Shown here piece after piece: positions 11,227 to 32,711 of a stretch of DNA of 64,000 nt; within the stretch, counting starts at the first letter, position 1; each line of letters opens with the position of its first letter. A program made the translations under genes and the position numbers. The stretch lies in the NCBI GenBank assembly GCA_020536535.1, contig JAHLWZ010000800.1:1-64000 (forward strand), given 5' to 3'. The notes below the pieces were generated by a model. It had not been told where the DNA came from. It searched no databases and saw nothing but the letters and a program-made list of their open reading frames with translations. The DNA is from Pelomyxa schiedti (lineage: Eukaryota > Protista > Evosea).

Positions 11227-14200
11227 ATGGGGTCGACAACATCTGCACCTGCACCAAGTCAAACTACGGCTGCGACGACAGGCAGCACTGCGGCCACCGC
11301 TTCTACGACAACGGCTACGTCTGTGTGTAGATCTACTCATCCCGAGTTGGCACCGTGGTTAGAGAAAGCGACGTCTCTGATGATATTGCGTCGCGCGCTG
11401 GGCCCCGCGTACCCGATTCTTAAAGCGCAACTTCTTGGGCAGTTTGTGTCGGCGCTAATGGCTCTCCCTCCTCCTGCCGTAACGACCGCAACTACTCCTG
11501 AAGCTTTGAGCGCGGCGCTGGCTGTAATGCAGGAACAAGCGTTGGCTGCTCTGGCTGAAATTACGTTTATTACTGCCGAGGAAGTGGCAGAGGCGAGGGA
11601 CATTCTGAGACCCCCAGAAAAGCACCCTTGGGATTCTTTGACCGATCCTCACTTGGTATGAAATGAATGGAACCTAATTGTATTTTCTCACTGTTGATTG
11701 TAGGTGAGAACAATTGACGCACCAGTGGGCCCCAGTTTGGTGCCATTCTTTGACGAGACTGGGGATTTCTCCAGCGTAGCCCTCGATATAAGTGGGTCTA
11801 CAAGTGGTGCTATACTGGTGTGGAGCAAGGATATCGCCACTAGAATGTGCGGCAATCGAAAAGCACTGTTGGACAAGTGTATTGCTTGGGATGACCGCGC
11901 AAGCATTCAGAATATCGACAAGCTCGCTTCACGTGGTGGTACTAATCCATCAGTAGTTTTCGACGTCTTGGGACCCAATGTCCGATCACTGCTCATCACT
12001 ACTGATGGTGAAATTGGTACCTCAGAAGTAGCCTCCACAAGGAAGAGGATTAGTACACGCGAATCTCGCTTGACAAATATTCTTGCGGTACTGGTTGGAG
12101 GACGATCAGGGCTCCCGGCAGCGCTTAACCTCAGTGTGTTTGCCCCATTTTTCGAGCACTGCCGCAAAGTCGGTGGTGTGTTTGCACTGGTGCACCACTG
12201 TGGGTCTGAGGGACAAAAGCCCAAAATTTTGATGAAGACTGGCACCTTTTCCAGCACGCTTCCGGATCCCCCGAAGGAGTACACCAACGAAATCAAGTGG
12301 GACCAGATTCCTGATGTTGACCCATCGGTGTTTTCCTCTCTTATGGCGCCAGATAAACCAGCTGGAGCCCGTGTGGTAGTCCCTGGGCAGATTTCTCATA
12401 GGACTTTACTCAGATGCCCCATAAACGTTGCGGCGATGGCGGCCTCTCTTAAACAGAAAACTACTTGGTCGGATGAAGAACTTGAGCAGCTGGATAGCTT
12501 TGTATATGAAACACTTGTTGACCTAGCTGAAGCCGCGGAAGGAGAAGTCGTATCTCTAAATGCATTGCGAGATATTGCGCATATTTGGAAAAAGTTGAAA
12601 ACACTCCAAGCTGACAAAGAGCTAACTGCAGCATCCTCCAATGTGGAGCCCCTACTTAGGGAGTTTGAGACCCTCACACGTAAGGATAAGCGTACACCTG
12701 AGGATACTGCGAGACTAGCAGCTCTCACTGAGGAGCTTCTACCCCTACTTCAGAATCGGGATCTAAAACGAACTGAAATGCTTGAAAAGCCCACCCACTT
12801 CCACTCTGACTTGATGCAACAACTAGCTGACTTCGAGAAATCTTCACTCAATCAGCAAACGTTGGAGACTACAAATGACTTCAGCCTTGCTGCTCTTACC
12901 AAGATGAGCAATCGAGCTCGAAGAGCTCAAACAGTTCTTGCGCCTGAACGGCAGGATAAGTGGAAGGTAGATGTTGGAGAAACATGCAAATGCACCGACT
13001 GTGCTATCTGTTGCACTGGAGACCGTGTAGCAGCATTATTGCTTGTCAATCTGGCGGAAGCCGACCCACAAGCAGCGGCTTTTAACATGAGTGATGTTGC
13101 TTTGAACGACCCACTCTGCCTTGGTAGCCGTAATCTCGTTGCGGTACCAGCAGGAAACTTGTGCATGCCTTGCGCTTATGCATGCTATGCCCTAGGTCTC
13201 CATCCTCTCACGAGACAGCCTCTTTCCTCTGTTTTTGTCCTAGCTGATGCTGCGCATGCCGGGAACCGAAATCTTATGCGAAACGCCCTCTCACGCGCCT
13301 TCTTCTGTGGTAAGATGGTTGGCACCGAATTTCAGGTTCTACTATCGGTTGTGGATGCTCTAGAGCTCACTGGCAGATTCCCCCCGGAAGTTATCAAGTT
13401 TTTACAAAAAACAGCCCTAGTTCACTCCAGAGGTAACCTCTTCACTGAAGGGCTTGGAGAGACACTACCCCTAATCGAAGCCATGAACGCTTTGGTAACC
13501 TACCCTTTGGTTGAACTGCAACCTGAAAGTTGGTTGATCCCGCTCCGCAATAAGAGTGTAGAATCCATTGGCCTTATAACTCGCTCCGTTCTTGAGCATG
13601 TTAGCTATGATAGCCAATCAATACAACTCTGCCGAGGACTCCTTCGCAGAGCGTTCATAAAATATTTATGCAGTTCACTCATTTCAATTGGAAAAAGAAC
13701 GGATGGTGCCACCGAATTACAAAAAATACATAGGGAATTTGAGGCAGATTTGTACGATGTGAAGCCTAGTGGAATTCCCATTTTCAATTCAGAGCACCTT
13801 CCGATTCCTCAGTCATCGTTTACCCTTCAAGCACTCCTCGGTGGACCAGGAGGGATCTACGCAATGTTTAATGAATTCTCTCGTTTTTGCCGACGCGCCG
13901 GGCTTGAAGGAGAGCTATTTACAGCTGCCGAGCTAGCAATTATCTTTTCTTCATTGCTAAACTCGGTTGTGGAGAGAGGCGTTGGCGCGTGTGCTGTCAA
14001 TGTTGAAGCACTGTTGAAAAGTTTATGTTCTCGTGGAAAACCATTGGCGGCCATCTGGTTTTCTAGAAAAGGCGAGGAACCAACTGTGGAGGCTGCACTG
14101 AACTGTATCAGTCAGTCAGCTCCATATCAGGGTGTGCACTCAACCGAAGGTACAGCTCACCATGATGATTCCTGTTTCGCGTGCCATCTTTTCTCCTCGA

Positions 14201-14769
14201 CAGTGTCATCTTGTGTGAACTGTGGATTCTCATTTGTTAGTGACGACGATTGGAGGCTCCTACGCAGCGGTAAATTCACTGAACCGGCTCTCAAAAGAAT
14301 AGTTGACACTCTCGTCAACAACCGCCGAATTCATTGGGCTTCCGTGTACCACACTAAACCAACATGCAGCTATCCCACACGCACGTCATCCATTGCGTCT
14401 TGGCATAAAATTGCCAGAGAAACGGCCTTGAATCCTCGCTTCATTTCCCTCAAGAGACCAACAAGGGAAATGCTTGAGGAAATGCTGCACGCACTCAGGA
14501 TTGTTCCGGAAGACAGAAGAGGAGGCATTTACAACAGATACAATTCCCAGCGGTGCCTTCAGATACTGTGGGACTACATGAAACGCAAGAATGCACTTAC
14601 ACCGGCACAAGTTGCCAGGCTCTCCATACCAATGACTATTGAGGAAAGGTTAGTTGTGGAAGTTCAGGCTTATGCCTTGCCATCAGAGACTCATCACCAG
14701 TTTTGCTCTTTGGATGGCCTCACACAGGAAGAATTGGATGCAATTCTCCTTCCTACCTTCCACTCCTAG
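11227..14769 (+). CDS. ~1164-aa vWA-domain protein with degenerate RING/U-box and Cys clusters
   Basis: 143-codon exon, phase-0 intron 11656-11703, then a 1021-codon exon. MIDAS DISGST...LITTDGE; CKCTDCAICC...LCMPCAYAC..LHPLTRQPL; CFACH...CVNC. Confidence 0.75.
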
Positions 14770-15131
14770 ATGTTAACAACTTAACAACAAACCAAAAAAA
14801 ACGAAACACTTTTATGTACCAACAAAAACAAGTCAAGTTCAAGATCATGGTAATCACGAAACGGCAGTTGTCGTTTTCATTCAAATGGACATAATCAATT
14901 GTCATCACCCAAGGTATCAACAAATGAAGAGAGCCACGGGAGGGACGTTGTGCCCGAGTCCAACTTGTGGGAAGAAAAAATGAAAATCAGAACGTCCCGA
15001 CTTTTTTATACTCACGGCGATCGTATAGAATTGAAGTCTTTAGTCAATTCATCAGTCCACACAACTTTTCCCCGCTTAGAGTAAAAAGAGTGGAGAAGCG
15101 ACAAATTCGCTATTATGGGTCGGGGTTTGTT

Positions 15132-18100
15132 TCAATGAAACGCAAGGTGTTGCGGAATTACTACGGAATGAGGAGGACCGAGAGGAGAACCGGCAGTGAC
15201 CGGACCAAGAACTTTGACTGTGAGGGTGCCGGAATGTGTGTAGGTAGTCAACCTGGTAAAATTTGAGTGTGAGAAGATGGAACAGTCTGTAAATGGGGTG
15301 CGGAATGGAATGGAACGGAACGCACTTGGATTTCTTTTCTTCGTCAATGAGAATGAACGGACCGGGGAGTGGTTGCTCTTGAGAGAGCTCCCTGAGGGTG
15401 GTCGTGCATCCTCCAAGGAAGTCCGCTGCACCCCCGGGATCGTAGTCATAGATAGCCAACTTGATGGGTGAATCCATTCCTCCACACTGCATGATGTTCA
15501 CGCAAACTGGCGCAAAAACGGGAGCCAAGTCTTGTGTGTGCACCTCCGTCGAGGCAATGACAGTGTTGGTATCCTCTTTTATAAGCTGGAGGAATGGGTC
15601 TGCAACGTGATTTATTTTGTATTATGTGACATTGTTTTTGGGCTATTTTACCACACAGTCCAACCAAGTCGTCACTTCTTGGTAATTCTGAAGCGGAAAA
15701 CTGTATTTGATAACCAGTGATGGCGTAAAGAAGTGGAGCGCAGGAATCCACCACAAGGTACACATGTGAGGGCCTTTGTTGTGCAGATGCAACTCAGAAA
15801 AAAAAAAAGTTGATAAATTCAAAACCTGGAATGCGTTGATGAAGAGTGCACTTTGGCTGAAGAGCAAACGCCAACATAAGAAAGATTCCGTAGATTGGTG
15901 TGTATGTCCTTGCAGTGTGGAATACTAATGTCTAGAGGTGTTTCAAGGCTGTGAATACCTTCAAATGGTATGGTAATCTCAAGTTGCTGATCCTTATTAT
16001 TGTGTATTAATTTCACGATGAATTAATCGAAACGTACAGGGAAAAATGGTGTCCTCAAAATATGGCTTTTGGCACCAGTGCTTGAGATTCCTATGATCTT
16101 AAAATCTCCCCCTAATGTAGAAATAAACGGAGAGGAAATAGAACCGACAAACCGGATAGTGACTCGGGAGATGAAGGGACAACAACTCTGCATGATAAAC
16201 GGTATGCCGACGCATTATATACTTCAGGGGGTGCATTCACGAGAGGAGAAATATCAAGTTGAAGACAGCCGGAGTTAGTGTACATAGGTATGCTTGATTC
16301 CATGAGTGGAAGAGGAAAACCGAAAAGAACAAACTGTGATCGCTTCTTGTTGATGAGAGTGCCAGACCACAGGCCAAAGAGCATATCTCTGTAGCCATAT
16401 CGTGCTTTTCCTATCTGAGTCCGCACATTATTTTTGAACGAGTATACACAGACCTATGAGTATTTCATGAGATAATCAGAACTCCTAGGAAGTAATAAGG
16501 TAACCTTGAAAAAACAAGTTGTCAGAGTGGATGCAAAGGAAGAAGGCCACAGTTTAAAAGGTTTCCAATCTGGTGTTGTACCATCAACAAGCTCAGATCT
16601 ACATTATGTGACTATCAGAAATACTCGTTGTCGAAATTTTCTGACTAATCGAACCTATGCACCAGCACAGCTGGTTGTCCCGGACTCTGCATGTGAATTT
16701 CAAACCAAGTATCAGACTTAGTGTCAAGCTTGATACCCTTGGGTCTGTTGTGCATTAGGTACGATATATCTTTTATTTAGTACTGTATGGAAAATGCAGC
16801 ATAGGTGGGAAGTTGTGGCAGTGCAGTTAAATGCTCTGAAGAGAGTAGACGGAAGCCGCCAGCTGAGCTTGACACGGAAATGGATTCAGGTTTTACAGCA
16901 TAGGTGAAGGGAGTAAAGAGGCACTCCCTCAGAGTAATTTGAAACTGGCCAATCAAATCACTTGTCCCATCCTTTTTTTTTTAAGGAAAAAGGAAGACAG
17001 GTGAAATACAAACCTTAAATCGGTTGTGGCACTTAATAGAAAACGGTGTATCCCACCCACCAACGTCAATAGGTGAAATATCAAACGGTGCCCACGAATT
17101 GTCTGGTGAAGGCTTACTGCGGTGGAGTAATAAACGGTCCGCATCAAGATGAGAAAAGACTTCGAAATAAGGTGCTGAAAGCACTGTTAGCTCCCCAGAA
17201 AATAGTATTTCATACCAGCTGAGCCAGTGAGTCTTGTTTTTTTCAGAGCAACTCCACCACATGTTATTCGCAGAGCAACAGGAAGTTCTGGTACCGTCAT
17301 TTGAAGTGGTGTGACTTGATCAATAGAGAAGCAACCGCTCCTAAAATACAAAAAAAAAGTGGATGAGATGGATCAAAAAACGGGGAAAGAAACGTGGTGA
17401 GGGCATTATCAGTATAAAGGGCCTCTTGGACATTCCCAAAGGACCATTCCCGTAGTGTACTTGTTAGTGATCCAATAAGATCATGAGAGCCGTCTTAATT
17501 TCACAGGTTAATGGTACAACAAAAAAAAGTGGAAACATGACTCACCTGCATCTGCATCAAACACAGATACCCCAAAGCTTTTATCAACGGGAACTGTACT
17601 GGTATTTACTACAAAAGGTGCCCATGTTGGGTTGAGGGACTTCAGGATCACCTCCGACCGGTAGAGTGGGATTTGTTTGCGGGTGGTTGTGCTCCCGGCT
17701 GGTGATAGTTGAGTAACTGGAACTTCCGCAAAAAAGATGAAAAAGGGGTCTGGGTAGTATGAGAAACTATCTGAAACAAGTATTCAGATTACCCGACTTT
17801 CCAGAGAGATCCTTTGCTGCCAATTTCCTGCCAGATACTGTTATCTTGAAGGCTGGAGCACTAAGTATGGAAGTTGTGGTATTTTCTATAGGCATAAGTT
17901 TTCGGATAGTAAGGCCACCCGAGTTTCTTCCAAGGACTTCACCCCTGGTAACCATGTCAGAAATGTAACTAGATTTTGTTGCTCACTTGAGGGGTACAGT
18001 AACATCATTATAAACTAGGTCACGTAACGTTAACTTCACGTTGCCAATTTGTTCGTGTGAGCCATCTTGGAAGAATAAGAATTGACTTAAGTGGGTGTGA

Positions 18101-21100
18101 ACAACCAGCATCCCAGTCATAGACAATGACAGTGAAGACTCCGTCTAATCCATTCAAGTCGGCTAGGTTTACTTGGAAGGACTTCCATTCAGGATTTAAA
18201 TTTTTAGTTATGACCTCAGACCTAGGTATACATTAAAAAGCACCAAAATGTGAAAGAAACCTAAAAATGGTAACAGAAGTGACAATCTTAAAGAAGGGAT
18301 CTGTATGTTATTAGGATCTGTCAGGTCATCTTGAAAAAAGAGTACCAGATTTTCCATTTGCATCTTTGCTGCTAAGCTTTGCAGCAGAAAATTTCATGCC
18401 AAACGCAGGAGGAGGTTCGTTTGTTGGTTCTCCATTCCTAAAGAAAAGACACTTCGCCTGCGATAGAGGTGATATTTCTTCCAAACAGAAGGCAGCATTA
18501 CTATTGATTGCATTAAAGTTTTCCCTTAAAAAAAGAACTGAAAACCTGTCAGAAATCTGAATGCCTGTCGCACTTGTGAGAGGGAAGGAAAACCCACCAC
18601 AGAGCAAATCAATCAGCATCAACTCGACACCGCCAACTTCTTTATGTGCTCCATTGGTTGAGTAGTGAGAAACTCTTAAATTCTCGTGAGTTATGGAAAA
18701 GTGACGCTAAAGAATTCACAACTTACCTAAAACGAAGAGAGGACTCGGGAGATCCAAAATCTTCTAAATCGATTTGGAATGGTGACCAAGTGCCTCCAAA
18801 TGCTGTGCCTCTCGCCTGCGTGGCAAAGATAACTTCACTTCGGTAAATCAATTTTGGGTCCTTGAAAACTTCCAGAAATACACCTTTCCCTAAATGGCAT
18901 TTTTTTTAAAAAAAAGGGACAAAGGAGACGTACCTTTTCTGGGTTGAAGATGCGAAATACCAAACTTTATTTGGTAGGACACAGAATAATTCTTTTCTGG
19001 GGCTATTGGAAGACCTTCCACATTGCTGAAGCAAAATCCCCCTTTGCTATTAAATCTTCCTTAGTATACATTCAAGTAACGCCCAATTGTAGTTACTTTG
19101 AAGAGCCGTCTTCCAGAGGAATCCTGAAGTCCCCAAATAAGAGGTCATGCACACGAAAACCAGCTTTGCCTATCAAGTCATGTCCTCCATCCTGCGGTCG
19201 TTAGTTGCACCTCAAAGTGGGAATAGAGTATTTACAGCATCCCAGTCGTAAACTTCAACTTCAAGATATGTATTGTGTCCCTCTCTGGCTTCAATGTCAT
19301 ATGACTTCCATGAGGGATTACAATTTTTGGGTACAACTAAGGAGAAATCAGTAAAAAATACGCCGGTTGGCTGATACCTTCACTCCGGTAAATCGGAACG
19401 TGTGTACGCTTGCCTTCATTTGACTTCATGTATAAAACAAAGAAAGGATCTGAAGAGCATAAGGGAATACAAAAGCAGTAAGGTGGAGTTGGTTTGACAC
19501 CAGATTTTCCGTTGGCGTCTTTAGCAGCAAGATGTAGGGCAAATGAAGATAGCCGGTAGGCAGGGAAATAAGGCAAGGAAAAAACTTGAGTGACAGGGTG
19601 CACTTCTTCTATGCACAGAGCCATTCTGGGTTGAGTTAGAACTATTTTTATCTGACCTTGGGGGTTTTGACCTTTCCAAGAGGTGATGTCTGTACGGACC
19701 AAATGTCCAGTGTCTCAAGGTTGTTGATATACTGCCCAGTGAAATGTGTGCTCCAATTTGACTGAACTTGAAAACCCGCACAGAGAAATTATCATCGAGT
19801 CCACCAATATCTGTGATGGTTGACCAATGTATAGGAGAGAAAGCATTTACCTGCTACGTTGAGTGTAAATTCTTTCCAAGAAGGATCCTTTCTAGTTACT
19901 CTAGAAGATCTAAATAAAAGTTTTGTATGATTGTGGACCTCAAAAAAGTACTCTGTGACGGATCAGAATAGAAGATGATCAGATATGTTTACCCTCTTCC
20001 GTAGCATGAGGAAGGTTTGGCGCTGGGGCATTGGCAAGAGCAAGGCTTACGCCTACGGCAATGGGTACGACCTGTGGTGGGGGTGGAGCAACGGGAACCA
20101 CATTGTCGATACAAAATGAGCCTTGTCTGTTGGAAGACTTTTTCGACAGTCCATATTGCCACGGTCCTAACAAAAGCTCCCTGAGAGAGTGAATCTTTTT
20201 TACATTCCTGTGGAAAATACCTGAATGTAACTTTCATGTTACCTATTAAATCGTGATGACCATTGGAATCCTACGTTGGTGTTGATGTTAATTCGGAAAA
20301 AGTGGAACACACCCAATCGAAAACTTTAATCTTAATATGTGAATCCACCCCTCCTAAGGAAGTGATATCAAGCAGGAAGGGTTCCCAGGAAGGGTTGAGA
20401 TTCTTATGAACAACTGAAGACCTGTGAATAAGGATTTTTTGCTTTCCAAGCAAAGTCCCATACACCTCAAAAAACGGGTCTGCAAATAAGATTGGCAGTT
20501 GGTTTAAGTAATAATAATGCACCTGAACTTAGAGAAATGTCGCATACAGGCAAGTGGTGCGCACTTGCCGTGACTTGAATAGCTAGTGGTATTTGCTTAG
20601 GTATAACTACATCACTGAGAACAACTTTGTCAACAGAGAACGCTCCACTAGATCTGTTTTTCTCATGACAAGATTATTTTTACACCTCATTTCATACGAA
20701 GTTATTCCAGAGGATTTCACAGCAAACTGACATGGAGTAAAAAGCCATTCACGAAGTGTTGTTTTTGCAGAGCCGATAATATCATGTGAACCCTCTTATT
20801 AACATGAAAATGAAAGTATCATAAACAATGTGAGGTACTTAGATCAGAGTCAAACACTTCCACAATAATTTTTTTGTCTTCACTGGTTATATCAGCCAAG
20901 TTGAGTGAGAATTCACCCCAAGAAGGACTGGTTGTTCGGTGGATAACTTCGGATCTGTATAATATTACCCTGTGAGAGTACCCAGTTGGCTTCCCTCTGA
21001 GAATAAAGTAAGGATCTGTACTAGGGTTATTCCTCACTTTCGTAGTAAGAGACTACCAGAGGAAAGATTGATATCACGGAATGCCAGTTTTGCTGCACTA

Positions 21101-24100
21101 GTTTTAATTACTACGGAGGAAAAGCGTGGTTTGATGATTGGCTGAGAGTTGAAAGTGAGTCGATCAACAGAAAATGCACCTGCTGACCTAATTGTGCTTA
21201 GTTACCAGTATTTCAAATGAAATACATACATGGGGGAAGAAGGGGAGTAAAGGCCAAATTGGAAAGGTATGAAGAGCCACTCCCTCAAGGTGGTCTCAAA
21301 TTTGCCAATCATGTCGTGAGTGCCATCTAAAAGCCAGTTTAAGATACATTTTCTCTTTAAAAAGGGTACCTGCGTCCCAATCCCAAACAGTAACAGTAAA
21401 TTTTGTATCCAGGTCAGTGAAGTCGCCGTAGTTAAGAGCAAACGGTTTCCATATAGGGTTTTTATTAGCAAGCATAACCTCCGACCGATAAATTGTGATT
21501 GGCTTTTTCATTCCTGGGGGTGTGGCCTTGATAACAAAGAAGGGATCTAGACAGAGTCATTGGAACGGAAAAGGTACTCGGCAGATAAAAGAACCTGAGG
21601 ATCCAGAGATATCACATGCCCTGAGTTTAGCTGCACTTGCTTCTACAGAGAGCGACCCAAACGTAGGAATAGTGTAAGGTTGATTTTGGGGAGTAACGCT
21701 GTTCACGGAAAAAGCACCAGAAGTTCTTCAGAGAAATTTCCTTAGTGAGAAAAAGACCATTGTTAATTACATACACGGAACTCCCTTTGGTGTAAAGACC
21801 AAATTGGTACGGCAAAAAGAAGAATTCACGTAAGGATACTTTGGCCTTTCCAATGAGGTCATGACCTCCATCTAAAAGATCATAAGAAGTGAAATTACAC
21901 AGTGGCATACCGGCGTCCCAATCCCACACAGCAATAGTGAACCGTGTATCAATGTTGATGACGTCACATAGATTAAGCCCAAATGGCTTCCAGACTGGCT
22001 CTTTGTTTGAATGTATAATCTCAGATCGAAAGAGGGTGATTTTTTTGTGGTGAGCTGTAGGCTTTGCTTTTACAACAAAAAAGGGGTCTGAGGAAATAAA
22101 TGAGGGACCAAAAAGGTGGATAAGATACTAACCTGAAGAACCAGAAGGGTCACGTGATGCTAACTTCATAGCACTGGCCTGTATCAAAAGAGATTCAAAA
22201 GATGGTCTGACATATTCTTGAGTCAACAGGGTTATCTTATCAACTGAGAAGCCTCCACATGATCTGAGTGAAAAAGTAAGTTGGGGTGGTAAAGAGAAAT
22301 TGTACATTGAAGATGAGGAGCTGTGAATACTAAATAAGTAGGGTGTGAATAACCACTCTCTCAAAGTGGTACGAGCAGACCCAATGAGATCATGACCTCC
22401 ATCTAAAAATGGAACTATTAGCCAGAAATCACACTATTTGTCAAATACCAGTATCCCAATCCCACACAGACACAGTAAACTCTGTATCTGCGTTTTTCAA
22501 GTCCTTTAAGTTCAAAGCAAAAGCTTTGAAAGTGGGGTTCAGGTTTGAGTGAATGACTTCCGATCTGTACAATGTGACAGGCGCATTGCAACCAGGAGGA
22601 GAGGCCGAAACAACGAAGTAGGGGTCTTGATACACATGAGAAAAATGGGACATAAATGGAATATACCAGATTTTCCATTTAGATCTCTAGCCGCGAGCTT
22701 TGTGGCACTGGCAGAAACCTCAACTGAGGCAAATACTGGCCATGATACTGGCTCGGGAACAGCCTCCACTTTGTCAATACAGAATGCACCATTGGACTTT
22801 CTTGTTGTAAGAACAGCGTCACAGGGAATGCCATATCTAAATGGCCCAATCATAACGTCCCGCAAACATATCTTGATCCTCCCAATGGTATCATGTGCTC
22901 CGTCTATTGTTATTGTTGAGGGTACATCTTGAAGGAGGTTGTATTACTGGCATCCCAGTCATAGATGTTTATTTCTATTTGGGAGTCTATCCCTTTCACA
23001 TCGGCGATATTGATAATACAAGGACTCCAGACTGCAAAAAAAATTAGTAGTTGCTGGCGGAAAAAAATGCTATACTTGGATTCAGCTCCTTTTTCACAAC
23101 TTCCGAACGGTATATGGTAACATTTTTTGAAGAACCCGGTGGCTGTCCCAAAATGGAAAAGAAAGGGTCACTCTTCCCAAGTGGGCCATCTTTAGCTATT
23201 AGATTGTATGCTGAGCAATAAAGCTAGAAGCCATTAGAAAACAAATCAACCTAAAAAAGGTAACCTTAATGGCTGGAGGAATGACTAATGGTTCAGGACT
23301 GAATGTAAGAGGTTCCAACTTATTGCACACGAAGGCACCACGTCTAAAGTCAAGTAAGAGAAGTAAAGATGAAAACTAGTACGATCTGCTACTGGAGGCA
23401 AGGAGTGGATGTCTAAATGGTCCCAAACTTTATGTTGTATATTAAATATCAAAGCAATAAAAAGGGAAGGGCATTACCACCAATCTCTTAAAGTTATTTT
23501 GCATTCCCCCACCTTTATTTATTAGTCAATAGGGAATATTTGACTGGCTTACCAAGTCGTGAGTCCCGTCTTTATCAAAGTCCTGTAAAAAATGAGTCCA
23601 TAGAAGGTTTTATTTACTGACTCATACCCATACTTCCACGTAAAACTGGGCATCAAGAGCTTGAAAGAGTTAGGGCATGAAGTTTAAGTCTAGTATTGCC
23701 ACACTTTTGATCAATGTCGTGTCTAAAACAAAACTGTTCCACACTGGCTGTGTACTCTTGTTAATGACCTCCGATCTGTAAATGGGTATGTGCGTGTCTC
23801 TGAAAGGCACCTTAACAACAAAGAAGGGATCTGAAAAGATTAAATGTGGTTGTAAAGAGTTGATGTAGAAAAGAACCCGAGGGTGTGGGCATCCCTGTTG
23901 CCGAGACATCAAGTTTAGCAATTTTGTCTCCACAAACCTCCAATCTGTATGAGGGTGCAAATATGGGTAAGGCCGGACCAGAAGGTATAATTTCAAGTTT
24001 GTCCACAGAGAAAGACCCCTTAGATGACCCGTCCTGGAAGACTGCTTGCTGATAGGGACCTGAAATTTATACAGGTTTTTCACTCTTTCTACTTAGATGA

Positions 24101-27100
24101 GATCCATACCATTATCAGATTGTATCAGGGAGCAAGTCCATTCCCGTAAGGTCGTTGTAAGTGAGCCAATAAGCTTTTTCAGGAAATGAGAAGGAAGAAA
24201 AAATGAGTTGCAGCAGGTACATCATGGGTTCCGTCTTGGTCGTAGTCATAAACTGTAATTTTGAAAGATGAATCCAAACCACCAAGAACACCAACACTGA
24301 TATCAAATGGAGCCCAGGTTGGTTGAAGTGTTTTCATATGTATTTCTGATCTATTTAGAGTAAAATTCCAGTTTTTCTTTTGGCCATCCTAGTAAAACCT
24401 GTAAACTGGTATGGAGTTCTTTTCAACAACAAAAAATGGGTCTGATAACCCCGTGGGACCATCCATTCTAGCTAAACCGTGGGCACTACATGTGACACGC
24501 AGAGCTGTTGGAATAACGAGTGCCGGACAGGTTGTTAGAGGTGTGACAGTTTCCACAACAAAGCAGCCACATCTGAGCGTTTTGAGTAAGGGATACAAAT
24601 TGGAGCACGAGAACATACACTGCTCCATCTTTTTTAATTCCTGGTTCTACCCACCACTGCAAATCACGGAAAACAATCGAACTGTGCCCAACAAGTTCAT
24701 GGTTTCCGCCTACCGAAGTAAATTGAGTGAATTTATGAATAAGAACAAACTCTTCTCCCAGTCGTAAACCTGAACAGAGAGAAAAGTTGAGTGTAGAGCT
24801 GAAATTGATGGTTTCATACAGTGATATCTATTGTGTCATCAATGCTACGGAACAAACTAAGAGGTAAATCAAAAGGTTTCCATTTCGGTTCTCGACTTTT
24901 ATGTATAACCTCTGACCTACATGTAGATATGAAATCTACAGTGATTAGAAAAGCATTGAAAAACCTGTAAAGAGTAATTTCCTGGTGAATATTTGGGTCC
25001 ATTTTGTGTATAACAAAGAAGGGATCAGCTGACATAGTTGCTACATCCATGACAGGCAATCTCCGGGCAAAGCAAGCAAGACTGCGAAGTGGTCATAAGG
25101 GAAAGGAACACTGTATTAAACAAACTTAATTGCAGGTGGAAGGGAAAAAGGTGCTGAAATTGCTTTGGGCAGATGTAACACTTGATCAATCGAGAAAGAA
25201 CCTGCCGTGCCACCGTCACTCTTATGGATTGCTGATGTGAACCACCCAAGAGAAATCTCTCTCACAGTGACAGAGAAGGAACCTGCAATTCAGAATAAAC
25301 TGCTGATTTTGAAAGAGTTTAAGGAGTACCAAGTAGTTCGTGATCTCCATCAATCTCCTATTTAATTGTGAAACTTTTATGTCAAAAGACACATGGTACC
25401 CAATCATAGACTTTGAATGTCAGTGTTGTTTCGAGACCACATGCCAAGTCAAGAGTAAAAGAGTGAAATTTTGGGCTTGAGCTTTGTTTGACCACTTCTG
25501 AGCGATACACTTTTGGATTTTGTTATCAAAGGAAAAAAAGAGGCTTCCAGTCCTTACCTTTATGTGGGGCAAAAAGTTCAAAGAATGCATCTATGAAACT
25601 GGTAAATGCACTGACACAGTTTTCATTTTTCTCAAACCTGATTTTTTTATCCCCGCTCCAGCACGTTCTAACTTCCCAATACTGCAGTGCAGTTCAATGG
25701 CAGGGATATTTGCAATAGGAGGAGGGGCTTCACATGGAACAGTGTTTTTGATTCCAAAGGAGCCATTGCTGTCATTACTTGTAAACCATATAGTAACTGA
25801 CATAGATTTTACCAAGTGGACCCCTTTTTGATGACTTGCTCAAACCATGACCACTGTAGCTCACTGAACGGAACTGTCAAACCCCCGATATGGTCGTGTG
25901 TACCATCATTGTCTTTATCATAGACATCTTTTTCCAAATTACATTGTATTTCATAACGTAAGAGTATACCAATAGTAAAAGAATCACTTGCAGAGGTAAG
26001 AAGGTGTAAAGGTAAAACAAATTCTGCCCAGGCCGGTGTAAATTGCTATGAAATGGTATGTATGGAGAATGAGGAATAATGTTACCTTTGGTATTGCTTC
26101 ACTTCGGTAGAGAATAATATTATTTTTCTTCACCTCAAAGAAAGGGTCAACAGACATTGTCAGTGTATCACAGACGGGAAGTTTTCTTGCGTAGCATTGC
26201 ATCCTTATTACTTTTTTAACTCTTCGGTTATAAACTGTCCCCCTTTACCTCACTGCAGGTGGGACTGTAATTTGTCTGAAAGGTACTTCTGGAAGAGGAG
26301 CAACCTTGGAAATGGAGAAGCAGCCTGACGTGGAGCCATTATGCATGATTGCTGTCGAATACCAGCCAAACGTTAATTCTTTGGCCAGACATCTCACCTC
26401 ACCAAGTAGCTCATGGTCCCCTGAAAGCAATGAAGTACACATACACCTTTGTTTTGACTAACCATCTTTATTGTAATCGAAAACCTGGATCACAAGTACA
26501 GTCTCAAGACCTGATGCCAGAGACACGGAGAATGGCTTGAAAGCTGAGAGTAAAGTTCAACAATAAGTGGAAGGTAGGAAAAAGTACTTGGGTTCAGGCT
26601 GTTGGTTACAACCTCAGATTTGTGGACTTAGTTTTTGGTTTTGGTTTTTTTTAGAAACGTGCAAAAAGGCACTGCATAGGTGCATACCCTTTGAGCTAAG
26701 AATAGAGACAGTGAAGAAGGGATCTGTAAACAGTGTTACACAAAGATTCCAGCAGAAGAGTGCTATACCACAACTACCCAGAGGACCATTTGCCCGTACG
26801 AGATTTTCGCAAGAACAGTAAAGTTCAAGGGCTGCTGGAGGTGCTGGTATTCTTCCAGGGGCAACTGGCTATCTTCTTATGAGTTCGATAATAATGTTTT
26901 GTAGGCTTACAGTTATGCTATTCACACACAAAGTACCATGTGTTGAACTATTCTCATAATTAAATAGAAGCGGACCTGAAGGTGAGTATCTGAAGATTCT
27001 TAGATGAGGAAATACCTAAGGAGGCCCATACGTTGATGGATGGAGGGGATATTGAAAAGGTCCCCCTATTAGGAGTTCATACAGTGTTGTTGAATACTTC

Positions 27101-29125
27101 CCAATAATTCTGTGGTCACCTCTCTTTTCCCAGTCATACACGATCTAAATATGTTACAAACCCCAAAAAAGTATCATGAGATTCTACCAGTGAAAATATC
27201 CCAAAGAGGCCATTTACACTCTTAACAGAGAGGGTGAATGGTGTGAAATCAGGATTATTGTTGTTGGAAATGTGTTCTGATCGATAAAGAAGTTCATTAC
27301 CAACTCTGACTTCAAAAAAAGGATCAGCTTTTTCCTAACAGAAATTCATGAGACACAAAACAACCAAGGTAATACAACAAGAGATCCTGGAATTGATAGT
27401 TTTCTGGCAGATGAGGTGATTTCAAAGGCTTCAGCAGTTGAATCGTAGGGAGGATTGAATGTTGTTTGTTGAACAAGGTTTTCAAAAATGAGATTTCCAG
27501 TGCTGCTAAAGCATTAGCGGAATCCTATAGTACTTTCATGCAGTGGAACGACCTTGAGGAACCATGCTTAAGACTGGCATTTTTGTTGGGCCACCGGAAC
27601 AACATCCAAGTACTCACTAATGTACTTCCAATTAATTTATGGGAACCTTCTGTGTCGAAAGTATAGACATCCACCTGGACAAAGGTGAGCCATCAAAATG
27701 ATTACATTTTGGTTATAACCTTTAAGGGCTCCTTTGGAGAGCTGTTCCATAGAGATGATGGTAACGTGAAGGCAGCCCAGGAAGGTGTTGATGTATTCTG
27801 GCAGATCTCTGAGCGATATACACTTGTGGTTTTAGTTGAAAGTACAAAGAAGGGATCTGAAGGTAATCTCAGAAGTTTCTTGGATCAACAGGTAAATACC
27901 AAGTCTTTTGGATAACAAATCCTTTTTCAATCCAGACCCAGTTACTTTAAATGTCCATGCATATGGATCGGCACTGAGAAGTGCCAATGACCCAACTGGT
28001 GTAACTGAATTGACATAAAATAGTCCAGAGTTCCCAGAGAGCTTTCTTATTGGAACTGAGGGGATAAAATAACAGAAAGAAAAATACTTTTTTGAGGGGT
28101 TGACCAAAGTGTAAGGAAAAGGGAACTTGAGTAAGTTGAGGGGAGTTGTACAACGACCAATCTCCTCACAATCGCCATCATCATCAAAATCAAAAATGGT
28201 AATAGTAATTTCAGTGTTCCAACCTGAAGCTAATTGGCAAATTTGAATGGGAAAGGTGAAATACCTGAAGGGAGTTCTCTTACATCAAGTTCAAAAGGAG
28301 CCCAAGTGGGATCAAGAGACTTGCGTATTATCTCACTTTTGAAAAGAACATCACCATTTGACAGGGTGATAACAAAGAAAGGATCACTTTTCCCAAGGGG
28401 TCCATCCTTCTTTTCCAAATTTTTTGCCCTGAAGCTAAATCTACCCATATTTGAGCACAGGGGAAAAAAGAATTCAGGCACACGAGTAAGCAGGAGGATC
28501 AGGAGGAATTGGAGTAACAAGAGCTGTTGCAGCAGCAACTACTATCTGGCCCTCTCTCTTGCCTTTTTTATTGACCAAATCCATAGCTCTGTTGACTTCC
28601 ACAAGCATTCGTACCTTGAAGATTCCTAAAAAACAAAGGAATAGAATTCGACCAGTACCTCCACAGTGGCATATCCCATATAGTCAAAACTACCATCAGC
28701 ATCCCACTATGTAGTGTATCACATATAACTACACTTTAAAAGAAATAACATACATCCCAGCACTCAATCTTCACTGTACCACTTGGTCCACCAACTTCAT
28801 GCAACCACAGTGTGAATTCTGCCCACTCTTTTCACCAAATAAAGAGAGTGGAAAAACTCATATCAGTGTAAAGTTGAAAAAATTAAAAAAAAAACAAACC
28901 AGGATCGAGTGTTTTCATTATGACCTCAGATCGATATACAGTGGTATTAGTGTCTGGGTGCTTGATCACAAAGAATGGATCTATTTAACCAATAAATTGA
29001 CCAACCAATACCATGACATTTAGTAGACACCCCTTTAGGGTTTTCTTATTCATAATTGAAGAAGAAAGATATTAGGACTCAAAAATCGAAAACAGACCAC
29101 TCTTAGAAAATAGACCAGAGTCCAT
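15132..29125 (-). CDS. Giant multi-C2 protein, about 25 tandem copine-type C2 domains, no vWA domain
   Basis: Recurrent unit (A/S)xxL...D..GKSDP(F/Y)F...YRSEV...NPxWxPF...V.DWD...HD.IG, repeated every ~550-650 bp. RSE-type motifs counted near 28925, 28350, 27810, 27290, 26620, 26100, 25500, 24915, 24345, 23770, 23105, 22560, 22025, 21480, 20950, 20420, 19905, 19385, 18840, 18220, 17660, 17120, 16600 and 15540, plus a degenerate unit at ~15800-16200. Last exon ends ...SGTLTVK...LAFH*. Start codon approximate. Confidence 0.8.
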
Positions 29126-29651
29126 TTTGGGTAATCGTTTGCCATGCAACGTGAGCTTGATGGCCGTGTTGGTTTCACGTCGTTGGTCACCAACTACACC
29201 CTGAACACATGCCAAAAAACGAAAGTTAGAGCGTTCGTAGTACGACCTTCAACTGGGCCAGAATTGCCCACACAACAACACAGAGGGAACAAAAAAAAAA
29301 AAAAGGGGGTTGGGGCTGCTTGCCCGGTGGCTGGCCATCTCTTTGCAATTCTTTTGGTTACGAGGGTTCAGAGGCGCTTTTCCTATTCGAGAGATCAACA
29401 GGGACGAAGTTCAGGATTGTCGGTTGGCCGTGAAAGACAACGAAACTGCGAGGACCACGGAGAGGTCATAGGATATTCTGCTCCACCACCTGCTAACAAC
29501 GATGTATTTCTCTTTACGCCCTGACAACAACAAAGAAACAGTCTCTTATGAATGTTTGAGGCGGTATAAAATCATCTTTTCTTGTTCTTGCACTGTCAAG
29601 TGTATGTAGAACATTTCAATTGGGTGTTCACTTCGAGAATTTTAAGAAGCT

Positions 29652-32036
29652 CTAGGTGAATTGCATGCCTTCACATGGTCCCCCTTCGCCAAAGTGGTTT
29701 CCCTAGTCAGTGTGGTTAAACACTCCTTTGGTGTTGGAGGAGACTTACATCATAATTACCAAGACAAAGCCAGCAGAATTGATGGGAACAACTTCGGCAC
29801 GTCCTACTGGTGTCAGTTTTGTGAAAACCAATCTTTTGTACATACATATGATTGCACCCACCTGGGTTAGGGTTATTTCACCCAAAGAAAACAAATAGCA
29901 AACGCACCATTTTTTTCGATTGCACAGTGGCACCTTGGGCACGGTTTTGAGTGTGTCCGGGCCCACTCAGTGAATTTGCTGTCCGCTTCTGTATTTTCCT
30001 CTGATAAGAGGTTAATATAAAAAAAAACTAGTGGTTGGAACTACGTTTCCATTGCTGCCACTGTTCACAAGATAGATCAATATGCCACTCTTCTTTGCAA
30101 TGGGTACAAAACGTGAAGCGGCACCTGGGATTAGTGCATCGGGCCATTCTTCCCCCCGACACTTCAAAAATTATCACATTGTCATTTTCTAGAGAGGAAG
30201 CCTACCGATCATGGCATTGCCACAGTCTGGTTTAGGGCACCACCTGACAAAATTTGAGATTGGAACAATATAGAATGAAGCTTCAACTTCACATCTGGCA
30301 TAGAATCAAGTGCTGAATGTAATGAGAACTTTTCATATTTTTGATATAATTCTTCATCAACAATCTGCTTGACCTCTGATGGGCTGACGGTTCCCTTGCA
30401 AGTTGGGTCTGGGCACTACCAATTTTAGAAATAAAGATAATGAAATCGGGATAGTTACTCTGAGTAGCGTTGTTCCAGAGTTAATGTTCGTTGTGCAGAA
30501 ATCTCGCATACACTGAAAGATAATGAGGATGACCAAGCAGAGAAAATGCATACCGGAATGCAGTAGCGATGGAAGCACCCATCCAGTGTATATAATTCGG
30601 ACATCTTTACATCTGTGAAACAAATTGGGCATAGGTATGTGCGTGACATCAGCTTTTTCTCTCGTTCTGCCTGCTCTATTGCTGCCTCCTGGGCTGCTTT
30701 TTCATTCGCCTTTCTTGCCTTCAATGCATCTCTCCTAAAGAAGTTTATACTAAGGACGACGTAACGTACGAACCAACGCTCAGCAGCAGCAGAAAGCAAG
30801 TTAGTCTGTACAGGCGGTGTAACCACAGGGGTAGCACCTAACGAAGACACTAGCGGGGTAGGTGCAGGCGTGGATGTTGGTGCTGGGGCCACGCTTGGAG
30901 AGGATGTAATGTTCGGCTGGGTAATATACTGTTGCCCACGCTATAAAAAACCTGCAATAAGTATACTGGTAGAGACTTTTTAGGAGAAACCTGCATCATT
31001 GCAAGTCTAACACGTAGGTTGCTCAATTCCCGTTCAAGAACTGAAATGCTTACCTCCTTGGCTTGGAGGGTGGTTTCAGCATTCAAAGCTCTTTGCTTCC
31101 AGTAATCTAGAGATTCCTAGATGTGTGTTGAAATTGATTTCAGGAAACGGTTCTTACCTCAGGCATTGCTACTGGGGTTGCAAGAGCTTCTGTGCTTGTG
31201 ACAGTAGTGGGTGTGGTCTGTGCTGGTGTTGGTGTAGATGGTGTAGGTATCTGCGCTGATTGTAACTTCCTTATAGCCATCTGGGCGTCTCTTTGTTATT
31301 TAGGTGACAGCAAAAATGTATTTCAGTGTTGGAACCTGGCTCGACGGTTTTCAATCTCCCATTCATGTTTCACTGCCTCTCGTATACAAATGATGCTTGG
31401 CTCTATACTGAGCCAATTTCCATCAACATTCACAAGGTTTTCTATTACGAGTCCTTGAGGACCCTCCCCAGATGCCATGAACTCGACCAAAGCGTTTTTC
31501 GTCCTTCCTTTTGGATACCTACGAACAAAGTGAGTATAAGGGCATCAAGTAGGTTCCGCAGTACAAGATGTCCACCCCACATAGACGAACCATTTTACAT
31601 TGCGGACTCCATGTGGAACCACAAACAGTGCCTCCAACTGAGCTCTGGTGGTCCTGGGATGAACATTCTTCACCAATATAGTGCGTTCCATCTCGTCAGC
31701 ATACTGAGACCTGTCGCCAACAGAATTACTTGCTCCCTCAGACAACACAGATGACAAAGTCAACGCAGGACGAGAGACGCCGCCAACTTCCGCCACAGAA
31801 GACGACGGAGACAAAGACAAATTGCCATATGAAACGGCACTAGAAGGGGGGATAGATGCAGCCGTCGTATTTGACGTGTCATACGCAGATCCGCCGCTAA
31901 CAGGATAGGAAGGTGCAGTTGCCGTAGGAGATGAGGAAAGCGGAGGGGCAGAAGGAGACGGGGTTGGATCTTCGTTGTCCGTTGTTTGGGAAGGAGATCC
32001 CAGCACCAGGCTCCCACTGCGCTTAAGTAGCCACAT
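29652..32036 (-). CDS. RBR (RING1-IBR-RING2) E3 ubiquitin ligase with N-terminal RRM
   Basis: RRM ERTILVKNVHPRTTRAQLEALF..KNALVEF; RING1 CPICF...CFHRYC; IBR VRWCPKPDCGNAM...CTHCKEEWH; RING2 CPRCHCAIEKNG|GCNHMYC...HQFCWLCLG; ends GEGGPCEGMQFT*. Confidence 0.85.
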
Positions 32037-32711
32037 TTCTCTTGCTTTTTGAAGTGCTGTAGTCGTCGGGGGTTAGGAAACAGAAAAAACAATAACAAAG
32101 GTATTGGAGCCGGGTAATTAAGTTGCTGGCCAGCAACACCAACCTGCCATCGCCGAAGTGTTACCAGTACTGGTCGTTGCTTTTCACGTTTCGCCTCAGA
32201 TATTTCCGAGAACAAGATTGTCCCGTAGAAACGACTTGGAAATTATCACTTGGAGAATCACAAAAGAAAGAACATCATAAGCGAGATTCAACAAAAGTGC
32301 CTGGTGTTATTAGAGCAAATGTAGAACTTACAATCAGTAACAGTGCTCAAGCTACCAAGTCGTCCTTCGAAGGACATTCACATTCATCAACCAAACCCCA
32401 ACATGAAACCAACACCGAACGTACTCCCCAGAAGCACATGTATCAAAACACCCGACAAATCCCATAATGGCGGCCGACCACGCGTCATTCTCGAGCCCCC
32501 TTTCAACGCCAACACCACCGCCTCCACCCGAGATCATACACAAACAACAACAACAAAAGCAGCAGCAACAACCGAAGCCCCACGCGATGTAGATGCAGAC
32601 GGCGGCGCTAATAGTGCCGATGGCGGCGTCGGCGTCGGTGTTGGTGCCGTTGATGCCGCAGGCGGTGGGCCAGCGCAGGCGCACCGAGACGGCCGCGTCA
32701 AGGGGGAGAAA

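Follow-up and report, generated by a model that had tools for sequence, protein, structure and literature searches.

Copines consist of two C2 domains (C2A and C2B) followed by a vWA-like 'Copine' domain (PF07002), by which target proteins are bound. Extended synaptotagmins (E-Syts) carry three to five C2 domains together with an SMP lipid-transfer domain and a hairpin in the endoplasmic reticulum. To our knowledge, all studied multi-C2 proteins (synaptotagmins, E-Syts, MCTPs and ferlins) combine two to seven C2 domains with either a membrane anchor or an effector domain. Copines are described as membrane binders (PMC10968396). Ferlins contain five to seven C2 domains, FerA, FerI and DysF inserts and a C-terminal transmembrane helix (PMC2923515, PMC12264198); MCTPs have 3-4 C2 domains along with C-terminal transmembrane regions (PMC12262843). 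Here we describe a minus-strand gene of the anaerobic amoeba Pelomyxa schiedti (Evosea) which was examined within a stretch of 64,000 nucleotides (nt), in the following called the window (GenBank assembly GCA_020536535.1, contig JAHLWZ010000800.1, positions 1 to 64,000). Its product is essentially a chain of C2 domains with 24 recognisable units and one diverged C2-sized module. GenBank already lists this gene under the name "hypothetical protein Pelo_10634 [Pelomyxa schiedti]" (P0170; 3,367 amino acids, aa), and it is not new as a record.

Results

The poly-C2 gene is a single gene with about 87-88 exons on the minus strand (29338..15132, span of the GenBank coding sequence). In a three-frame motif scan, matches to the C2 motif appeared about every 550 bp on this strand from ~29.1 kb to ~15.4 kb, and the stop-to-stop pieces revealed a unit of ~135 aa, split across the minus-strand frames by short interruptions. 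For our own gene model a cyclic unit profile was aligned with the genomic codons by spliced alignment, allowing GT-AG introns in three phases and penalised free breaks. The raw alignment contained ~25 units and ~82 introns, mostly of 39-54 nt; a few mis-set introns in diverged units were exchanged for RNA-derived ones in the final model. In this model the frame stays open for 3,362 codons, beginning at 29200 and ending in the TGA at 15134-15132, and is divided into 87 exons by 86 GT-AG introns with a median length of 44 nt. Pelo_10634 was absent from the top-listed 50% representatives and was recovered by a word-index search with the Pyxidicula homologue. Its locus on the contig spans 14,207 bp, and over the full length it is 99.0% identical to our independent model. 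Six small differences were observed, all at intron boundaries which had been flagged as doubtful beforehand. The protein has a mass of ~370 kDa and an isoelectric point of ~6.2.

An earlier, sequence-only reading of the stretch had proposed one spliced minus-strand gene of roughly 3,300 aa at 15132-29125. The single gene is borne out by the open frame, the RNA joints described below and the matching GenBank model, and the length came out at 3,362-3,367 codons or aa. The low coordinate is the stop codon; the high one proved to be an internal ATG, the annotated start being located at 29338. The annotated first intron (29201-29323) would have a GC donor (29323-29322) and, with 123 nt, about three times the usual length. 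Alternative donors with GT lie nearby at 29290, 29281 and 29246.

Three single-cell RNA runs and one DNA run were available for the region and were compared over 15001-21000 of the window. The RNA contigs contained 15 listed joints, all of them CT..AC on the plus strand and hence GT..AG on the minus strand; the DNA run contained none. Agreement with the model was complete for the listed joints at profile-placed introns (10 of 10), and the remaining five corrected diverged 3' units. The spliced contig X3 record 6 (2,928 nt) reaches from 15095, beyond the stop codon, to ~18.97 kb and overlaps with contig X1 record 2 (1,186 nt), which reaches from 18758 to beyond 20179. Thus, the last ~10 units are joined in RNA. 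Furthermore, contig L002 of the Logan data (SRR23919877), found via the protein match P0107, matched the window exons from 27838 to 26086 exactly. It added nine introns, five confirming and four correcting the model, and raised the introns observed in RNA to 24 in total. One intron of 42 nt (26421-26462) is retained in L002 and breaks the open reading frame there; this contig stems from a transcript whose processing was incomplete, and it does not point to another gene structure.

At contig ends the reverse-complemented SMART template-switch oligo was detected (15058, 18989, 19161 and 20956). These ends look like internal template-switch artefacts, and their side fits a minus-strand RNA. Single-base differences between RNA and genome (18382 C>T in X3, 18973 G>T in X1 and one mismatch at ~27313 in L002) are probably alleles or errors, each being located near a contig end or in one contig only.

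Pfam C2 (PF00168) matched Pelo_10634 in 20 stretches (E=8e-235), and six of the seven submitted C2 exon pieces were matched by the same family. With a hidden Markov model (HMM) built from the units themselves, 24 units of ~130-135 aa with short, Pro-rich linkers were identified at residues 13-3305 of 3,362. Together with the diverged module they add up to the ~25 units counted by eye in the sequence-only reading. No other Pfam domain was found on Pelo_10634 above the cut-off, and neither PF07002 nor VWA gave a match; the units leave no space for a vWA domain. No transmembrane segment was detected by hydropathy: the highest Kyte-Doolittle mean over 19 residues is 1.58 (<1.6) and lies within beta-strand sequence, and the C-terminus is hydrophilic. 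The protein is free of transmembrane and vWA regions, as had been proposed.

The diverged module (U24) is C2-sized by its dimensions and position, and its C2 fold is only putative, with a probability of 4% in the hhalign comparison to the unit profile and a predicted local distance difference test (pLDDT) of 41 for the AlphaFold2 (AF2) model. In the alignment it is conserved with clear motifs in a Pelomyxa paralog, Pyxidicula and Rhizamoeba.

For the Ca2+ sites, the positions corresponding to synaptotagmin-1 (Syt1) D172, D178, D230, D232 and D238 in loops 1 and 3 were scored. The D-x-D-x5-D motif after the W/Y-D pair and two aspartates of loop 1 correspond to the five synaptotagmin-1 ligands. 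All five positions are acidic in 16 of the 25 units, and degenerate positions were observed in the other nine (U03-U05, U07, U17, U19 and U22-U24). Despite an identity of just 40%, the full-length paralogs P0168 and P0169 each retain 14 intact units. Degenerate positions are largely common to Pelo_10634 and these two proteins; in all three, for instance, unit 4 reads G-D-D-E-R and the final unit has an intact site. The preservation of this pattern at 40% identity speaks for selection acting on Ca2+ binding in the majority of units, and for roles that depend on position. Coordinates and evidence for the units and gene ends are listed in Table 1.

Table 1 Features of the poly-C2 gene (window coordinates)
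Feature	Coordinates	Strand	Predicted Ca2+ site	Evidence
First coding exon as annotated, putative; 5 codons M-A-S-H-R, start ATG 29338	29324..29338	-		GenBank N-terminus compared with own model
U01	28507..29164	-	five acidic positions, DDDDD	self-HMM 136.6 bits
U02	27994..28494	-	five acidic positions, DDDDE	self-HMM 122.3 bits; exon Pfam C2 E=5e-8
U03	27466..27960	-	degenerate	self-HMM 101.8 bits; introns in RNA contig L002
U04	26863..27432	-	degenerate, GDDER	self-HMM 110 bits; RNA contig L002
U05	26272..26832	-	degenerate	self-HMM 124.6 bits; RNA contig L002
U06	25720..26259	-	complete	self-HMM 137.1 bits
U07	25149..25704	-	one ligand position lost	self-HMM 129.9 bits
U08	24530..25136	-	five acidic positions, DDDEE	self-HMM 136.9 bits
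U09	23971..24505	-	complete	self-HMM 147.4 bits
U10, additional small exons	23283..23952	-	complete	self-HMM 140 bits; exon list
U11	22737..23276	-	complete	self-HMM 151.1 bits
U12-U15	20596..22727	-	all complete	self-HMM 138-155 bits; identity matrix; exon list
U16	20078..20583	-	complete	self-HMM 135.2 bits; RNA contig pieces
U17	19580..19993	-	lost	self-HMM 60.8 bits; RNA exon 19672-19810 sets intron 19626-19671
U18	19007..19564	-	complete	self-HMM 107.8 bits
U19	18455..18878	-	lost	self-HMM 41.3 bits; RNA joint 18890-18933
U20	17872..18409	-	five acidic positions	self-HMM 141 bits; RNA joints
U21	17295..17856	-	complete	self-HMM 117.8 bits; RNA joints
U22	16834..17276	-	lost	self-HMM 56.2 bits; RNA joints
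U23	16340..16722	-	lost	self-HMM 35.1 bits; RNA joints
U24, diverged beta-rich C2-sized module, ~118 aa	15722..16210	-		all introns in RNA
U25 (last), mostly one 274-nt exon	15379..15712	-	complete	Pfam C2 E=8e-6; self-HMM 57.8 bits
Stop codon TGA	15132..15134	-		sequence; spliced RNA contigs continue through to 15095
3' untranslated region, part	15095..15131	-		RNA contig X3 record 6 begins at 15095

Motifs in the style of copines (GKSDPF, YR[ST]EV, NPxW and DxDxxxxHD[LF]IG) occur in the C2 units. When the unit profile (alignment A2) was compared with the PDB sequences, the Arabidopsis copine BONZAI1 was matched first (E=5e-31, C2B 73.8 bits), followed by synaptotagmin-1 with ~49 bits per single C2 domain. 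The fold was modelled by AF2 for two units of the paralog P0006 (55% identical) instead of the window protein, with a pLDDT of 89.4 and a predicted template modelling score (pTM) of 0.84, and the eight-stranded beta-sandwich of C2 domains is supported for this paralog. In a Foldseek search of the PDB with this model, the ten best matches were all chains of BON1 and all top matches were C2 structures; ferlin structures were among the weaker fold and sequence matches. Both domains of the model never superposed jointly on BON1 (root-mean-square deviation ~20 Å), so the packing between the domains is not copine-like. Two of the ten short matches scanned among the top 150 of 9,424 profile matches were true copines with PF07002. 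Profile search and paralog model support the placement of the units nearest to copine C2B domains, and the copine-type motifs of the sequence-only reading as well as the C2 fold of a modelled unit pair were recovered in this way.

The mean pairwise identity of the units is 29%. With Tandem Repeats Finder no tandem repeat was found in the gene region on DNA level, because the units are only ~29% identical to one another; the array is therefore old and not an assembly artefact. It is under constraint as well: in three colinear paralogs, which are 40-80% identical, intact and degenerate Ca2+ sites follow the same positional pattern. Its youngest block is formed by U12-U15, which are 44-54% identical to one another and each show the same 177/97/131-nt exon pattern. 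Three introns recur throughout the array: in phase 1 before the DPFF motif (15 units), in phase 1 after the WDWDA motif (8 units) and in phase 2 before the SGAF strand (about a dozen units). Thus, the array expanded through tandem duplication of a unit that contained introns, for the most part long ago.

Besides Pelo_10634, three further giant paralogs are encoded in the P. schiedti genome. Pelo_11264 (P0168) and Pelo_9897 (P0169) are 40% identical to Pelo_10634 and colinear with it. Compared with Pelo_10634 they have 170-190 additional N-terminal residues (P0168:1-170, P0169:1-190). A PH-like N-terminus was considered for both, but the similarity is marginal, with no Pfam match and a BLAST E value of ~0.01 against the PH domain of Pyxidicula. 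The third paralog (JAHLWZ010000650.1, L001:1-14932) consists of Pelo_8290 and its upstream model, which are 55-80% identical to Pelo_10634. It is colinear from U01 to the last C2 domain and has ~27 units, two of them extra in the central young block. In the public annotation this locus is split into a model of 2,536 aa and Pelo_8290 with 1,210 aa, the upstream one fused to an adh_short/KR short-chain dehydrogenase; splitting and fusion are probably annotation errors.

An exhaustive profile search yielded 9,424 matches, 204 of them below 1e-30, and more than 30 cluster representatives with at least ten matched stretches. Within Amoebozoa, Pyxidicula operculata encodes isoforms of 3,568 and 4,016 aa in single Trinity transcripts (27 units), with a PH domain at residues 4-90, and the protein of Luapeleamoeba hula (19-20 C2 domains) has two N-terminal CH domains. 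No extra domain was found in Rhizamoeba saxonica (12 C2), Phalansterium solitarium (18 C2), Protostelium (6 C2) and Arcella (a fragment with 4 C2). Outside this group, an N-terminal PH domain was detected in the apusomonad Thecamonas trahens (3,282 aa), and no extra domain in the metamonads Anaeramoeba ignava (3,901 aa, 21-22 C2), Carpediemonas membranifera (16 C2), Histomonas (13 C2) and Trichomonas (9 C2), in Diphylleia rotans of the CRuMs (13 C2) and in the glaucophyte Cyanophora paradoxa (11 C2). Word-index searches returned no homologue from Dictyostelium, Entamoeba or Acanthamoeba and are too insensitive to imply absence.

Amoebozoan proteins scored 80-104 bits per unit, true copines ~68 bits and the giants from outside Amoebozoa 30-47 bits. 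Clear membership in one family with the Pelomyxa gene is therefore confined to the amoebozoan set. The non-amoebozoan giants score below true copines, and they may be independent expansions. A C-terminal order of weak unit, diverged module, last C2 domain and short tail is shared by Pelo_10634, P0151 and P0006. The diverged module with its motifs AYR..C, PFEG, LSLP and LV[IV]DS is the penultimate module in Pyxidicula, too. Compared unit by unit, Pelomyxa and Pyxidicula gave few reciprocal best matches (Spearman 0.45), and only the C-terminal modules are clearly equivalent. With more than 20 copine-type units and the shared C-terminal order, Pelo_10634 agrees with the amoebozoan proteins represented by Pyxidicula TRINITY_DN5524. 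It is a member of an unnamed amoebozoan poly-C2 family and a new architectural variant within C2 proteins.

In the databases the giant relatives are named "hypothetical", "C2 domain-containing" or "Ca2+-dependent lipid-binding protein", and full-text literature searches turned up papers on copines, ferlins, E-Syts and MCTPs but none on proteins exceeding about seven C2 domains or on C2 proteins of Pelomyxa. The sequence-only reading had regarded the gene as the most unusual object of the window and had suggested a search of amoebozoan proteomes. Such relatives were found in Pyxidicula, Rhizamoeba, Phalansterium and Luapeleamoeba. Uniqueness was overstated, given three paralogs and proteins with 10-27 C2 domains in many protists; it stands that none of them is characterised or, in the literature searched, published.

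The neighbouring gene upstream (29652-32150, minus strand) encodes an IBR/RBR-type E3 ubiquitin ligase of 604 aa (PF01485 and related families), whose stop codon is ~300 bp from the start of the poly-C2 gene. Downstream, a convergent GenBank gene of 1,164 aa is located at 11227-14769 (plus strand), with a long open reading frame at 11704-14769. This frame was considered as the missing vWA or RING part of a split copine and was rejected, since no Pfam match was obtained even at E<=5. Due to the flanking genes there is no space for further domains at either end of the poly-C2 gene.

Discussion

The results are best explained by one transcribed poly-C2 gene whose product binds membranes multivalently on a rise of Ca2+, a reading which we hold with moderate confidence. 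Judged by its sequence, the protein probably serves, in soluble form, as a membrane binder or scaffold of high multivalency that depends on Ca2+. Like the C2 domains of copines and synaptotagmins, each of the 16 units with five acidic positions would take up Ca2+ and subsequently acidic phospholipid. With Ca2+ at its resting level the protein would be cytosolic; a local rise, caused by wounding, phagocytosis or cortical signalling, would lead to membrane binding at very high avidity. Since the protein would be tens of nanometres long, coating, cross-linking or scaffolding of membranes is conceivable, with no copine-like signalling via a partner-binding domain. The relatives headed by a PH domain, as in Pyxidicula and Thecamonas, or by CH domains, as in Luapeleamoeba, would fit a scaffold role at membrane or cortex. 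The roles in membrane repair, tethering or spacing suggested by the sequence-only reading are reasonable as possibilities.

Several observations weigh against this explanation. RNA continuity extends over ~40% of the gene, from 15.1 kb to at least 20.2 kb and over 26.1-27.8 kb, and the rest is given by the open frame and the GenBank model. The first exon and the 123-nt first intron with its GC donor are located outside the RNA-covered part. An upstream reading (~29300-29247, frame 2, after a T14 run) encodes a hydrophobic stretch, and a short N-terminal anchor is possible. Furthermore, the predicted Ca2+ site is incomplete in 9 of the 25 units, and some of the chain would therefore have to serve something else. 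Finally, the predicted Ca2+ and lipid binding is read solely from conserved residues, in this protein as in its homologues.

Such units would find a place in a structural rod or elastic spacer, in which rigid C2 beads, titin-like, connect the cytoskeleton with membrane or cortex or act as distance holders, with Ca2+ being secondary or stiffening the chain. The pTM of the di-C2 model suggests a fixed orientation of neighbours, the linkers are short, the nine units without a Ca2+ site are still kept in the paralogs, and one relative possesses two N-terminal CH (actin-binding) domains. However, a purely structural role would need none of the five acidic ligands, which are kept in 16 units and in the matching units of the 40%-identical paralogs, and in Pelo_10634 itself no CH or other cytoskeleton-binding domain is present. 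We regard a rod as unlikely. Still less probable is a high-capacity cytosolic Ca2+ buffer or sensor, with dozens of low-affinity sites taking up or reporting Ca2+ transients in a very large multinucleate cell and no role at membranes. Synaptotagmin-type C2 domains bind two to three Ca2+ ions each, so the 16 intact predicted sites would correspond to ~30-50 ions per molecule, and the protein has no membrane anchor. But C2 domains are known as a family to bind Ca2+ weakly without lipid, and homologues with PH domains indicate membranes. The closest relatives, the copines, bind membranes as well (PMC10968396).

Several short genes of copine type lying side by side, or a repeat array in decay that over-eager prediction has joined, would account for the RNA contigs leaving ~21-26 kb and 27.8-29.3 kb uncovered, for the contig which retains an intron with a stop, and for the public annotation of the paralog locus L001 being split into two models. 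Against this stand a frame open over 10 kb of coding sequence with 86 canonical short introns, spliced contigs bridging ~10 units, a single Pyxidicula Trinity transcript encoding 27 units and three paralogs with the same length and order. It is hardly credible that this is not one gene.

A broader proposal, which we consider doubtful, is that poly-C2 proteins with 10-27 domains, some of them headed by PH or CH domains, are an old, widespread and undescribed class of Ca2+ effectors. They would coat or cross-link membranes as Ca2+-triggered polymers, e.g. for wound sealing or stiffening of the cortex in large naked amoebae, by a mechanism unlike that of ferlins, annexins or copines, and would have been lost in animals, fungi and plants.

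A soluble chain of ~25 C2 domains, 16 of them with intact predicted Ca2+ sites, is a case of extreme multivalency. It would reveal what avidity alone achieves at a membrane, whether coating, bridging or the sensing of curvature or damage. The family is conserved: Pelomyxa has four paralogs, orthologs are spread over Amoebozoa, and look-alikes occur in at least four further eukaryotic supergroups. The gene is therefore no genomic oddity but belongs to unstudied protist cell biology. The practical value is modest: public annotation is joined and corrected (paralog on JAHLWZ010000650.1), and a profile for finding the family is defined.

In general, Pelo_10634 resembles copines (BONZAI1/BON1, PDB 6KXK and 6KXU; Dictyostelium CpnA-F; human CPNE1-9) in its C2 motifs, in being soluble and in the absence of a transmembrane segment. 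It differs from them by 24-25 C2 domains instead of two, by the missing vWA domain and, according to the P0006 model, by a different orientation of neighbouring C2 domains. The C2 sequence type of copines is present in Pelo_10634; the PF07002 domain and the arrangement of two C2 domains are not. Ferlins (dysferlin, otoferlin, myoferlin) are likewise large proteins with many tandem C2 domains, which are used in Ca2+-dependent membrane fusion and repair. By Pfam search and hydropathy, no FerI, FerA, FerB or DysF domain and no C-terminal transmembrane helix was found in Pelo_10634. Extended synaptotagmins or tricalbins and MCTPs likewise carry C2 domains in series, bind acidic membranes and tether two membranes, whereas Pelo_10634 is without anchor and has five times as many C2 domains. 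An SMP domain was not matched by Pfam in Pelo_10634, in which only five annotated residues (putative first exon) precede the first C2 domain, and for the PRT_C transmembrane region of MCTPs neither a Pfam match nor a transmembrane segment was detected. The same architecture is present in the uncharacterised giant multi-C2 proteins, which within Amoebozoa belong to the same family. Compared with Pelo_10634, an N-terminal PH domain is additional in the proteins of Pyxidicula and Thecamonas, as are two CH domains in that of Luapeleamoeba.

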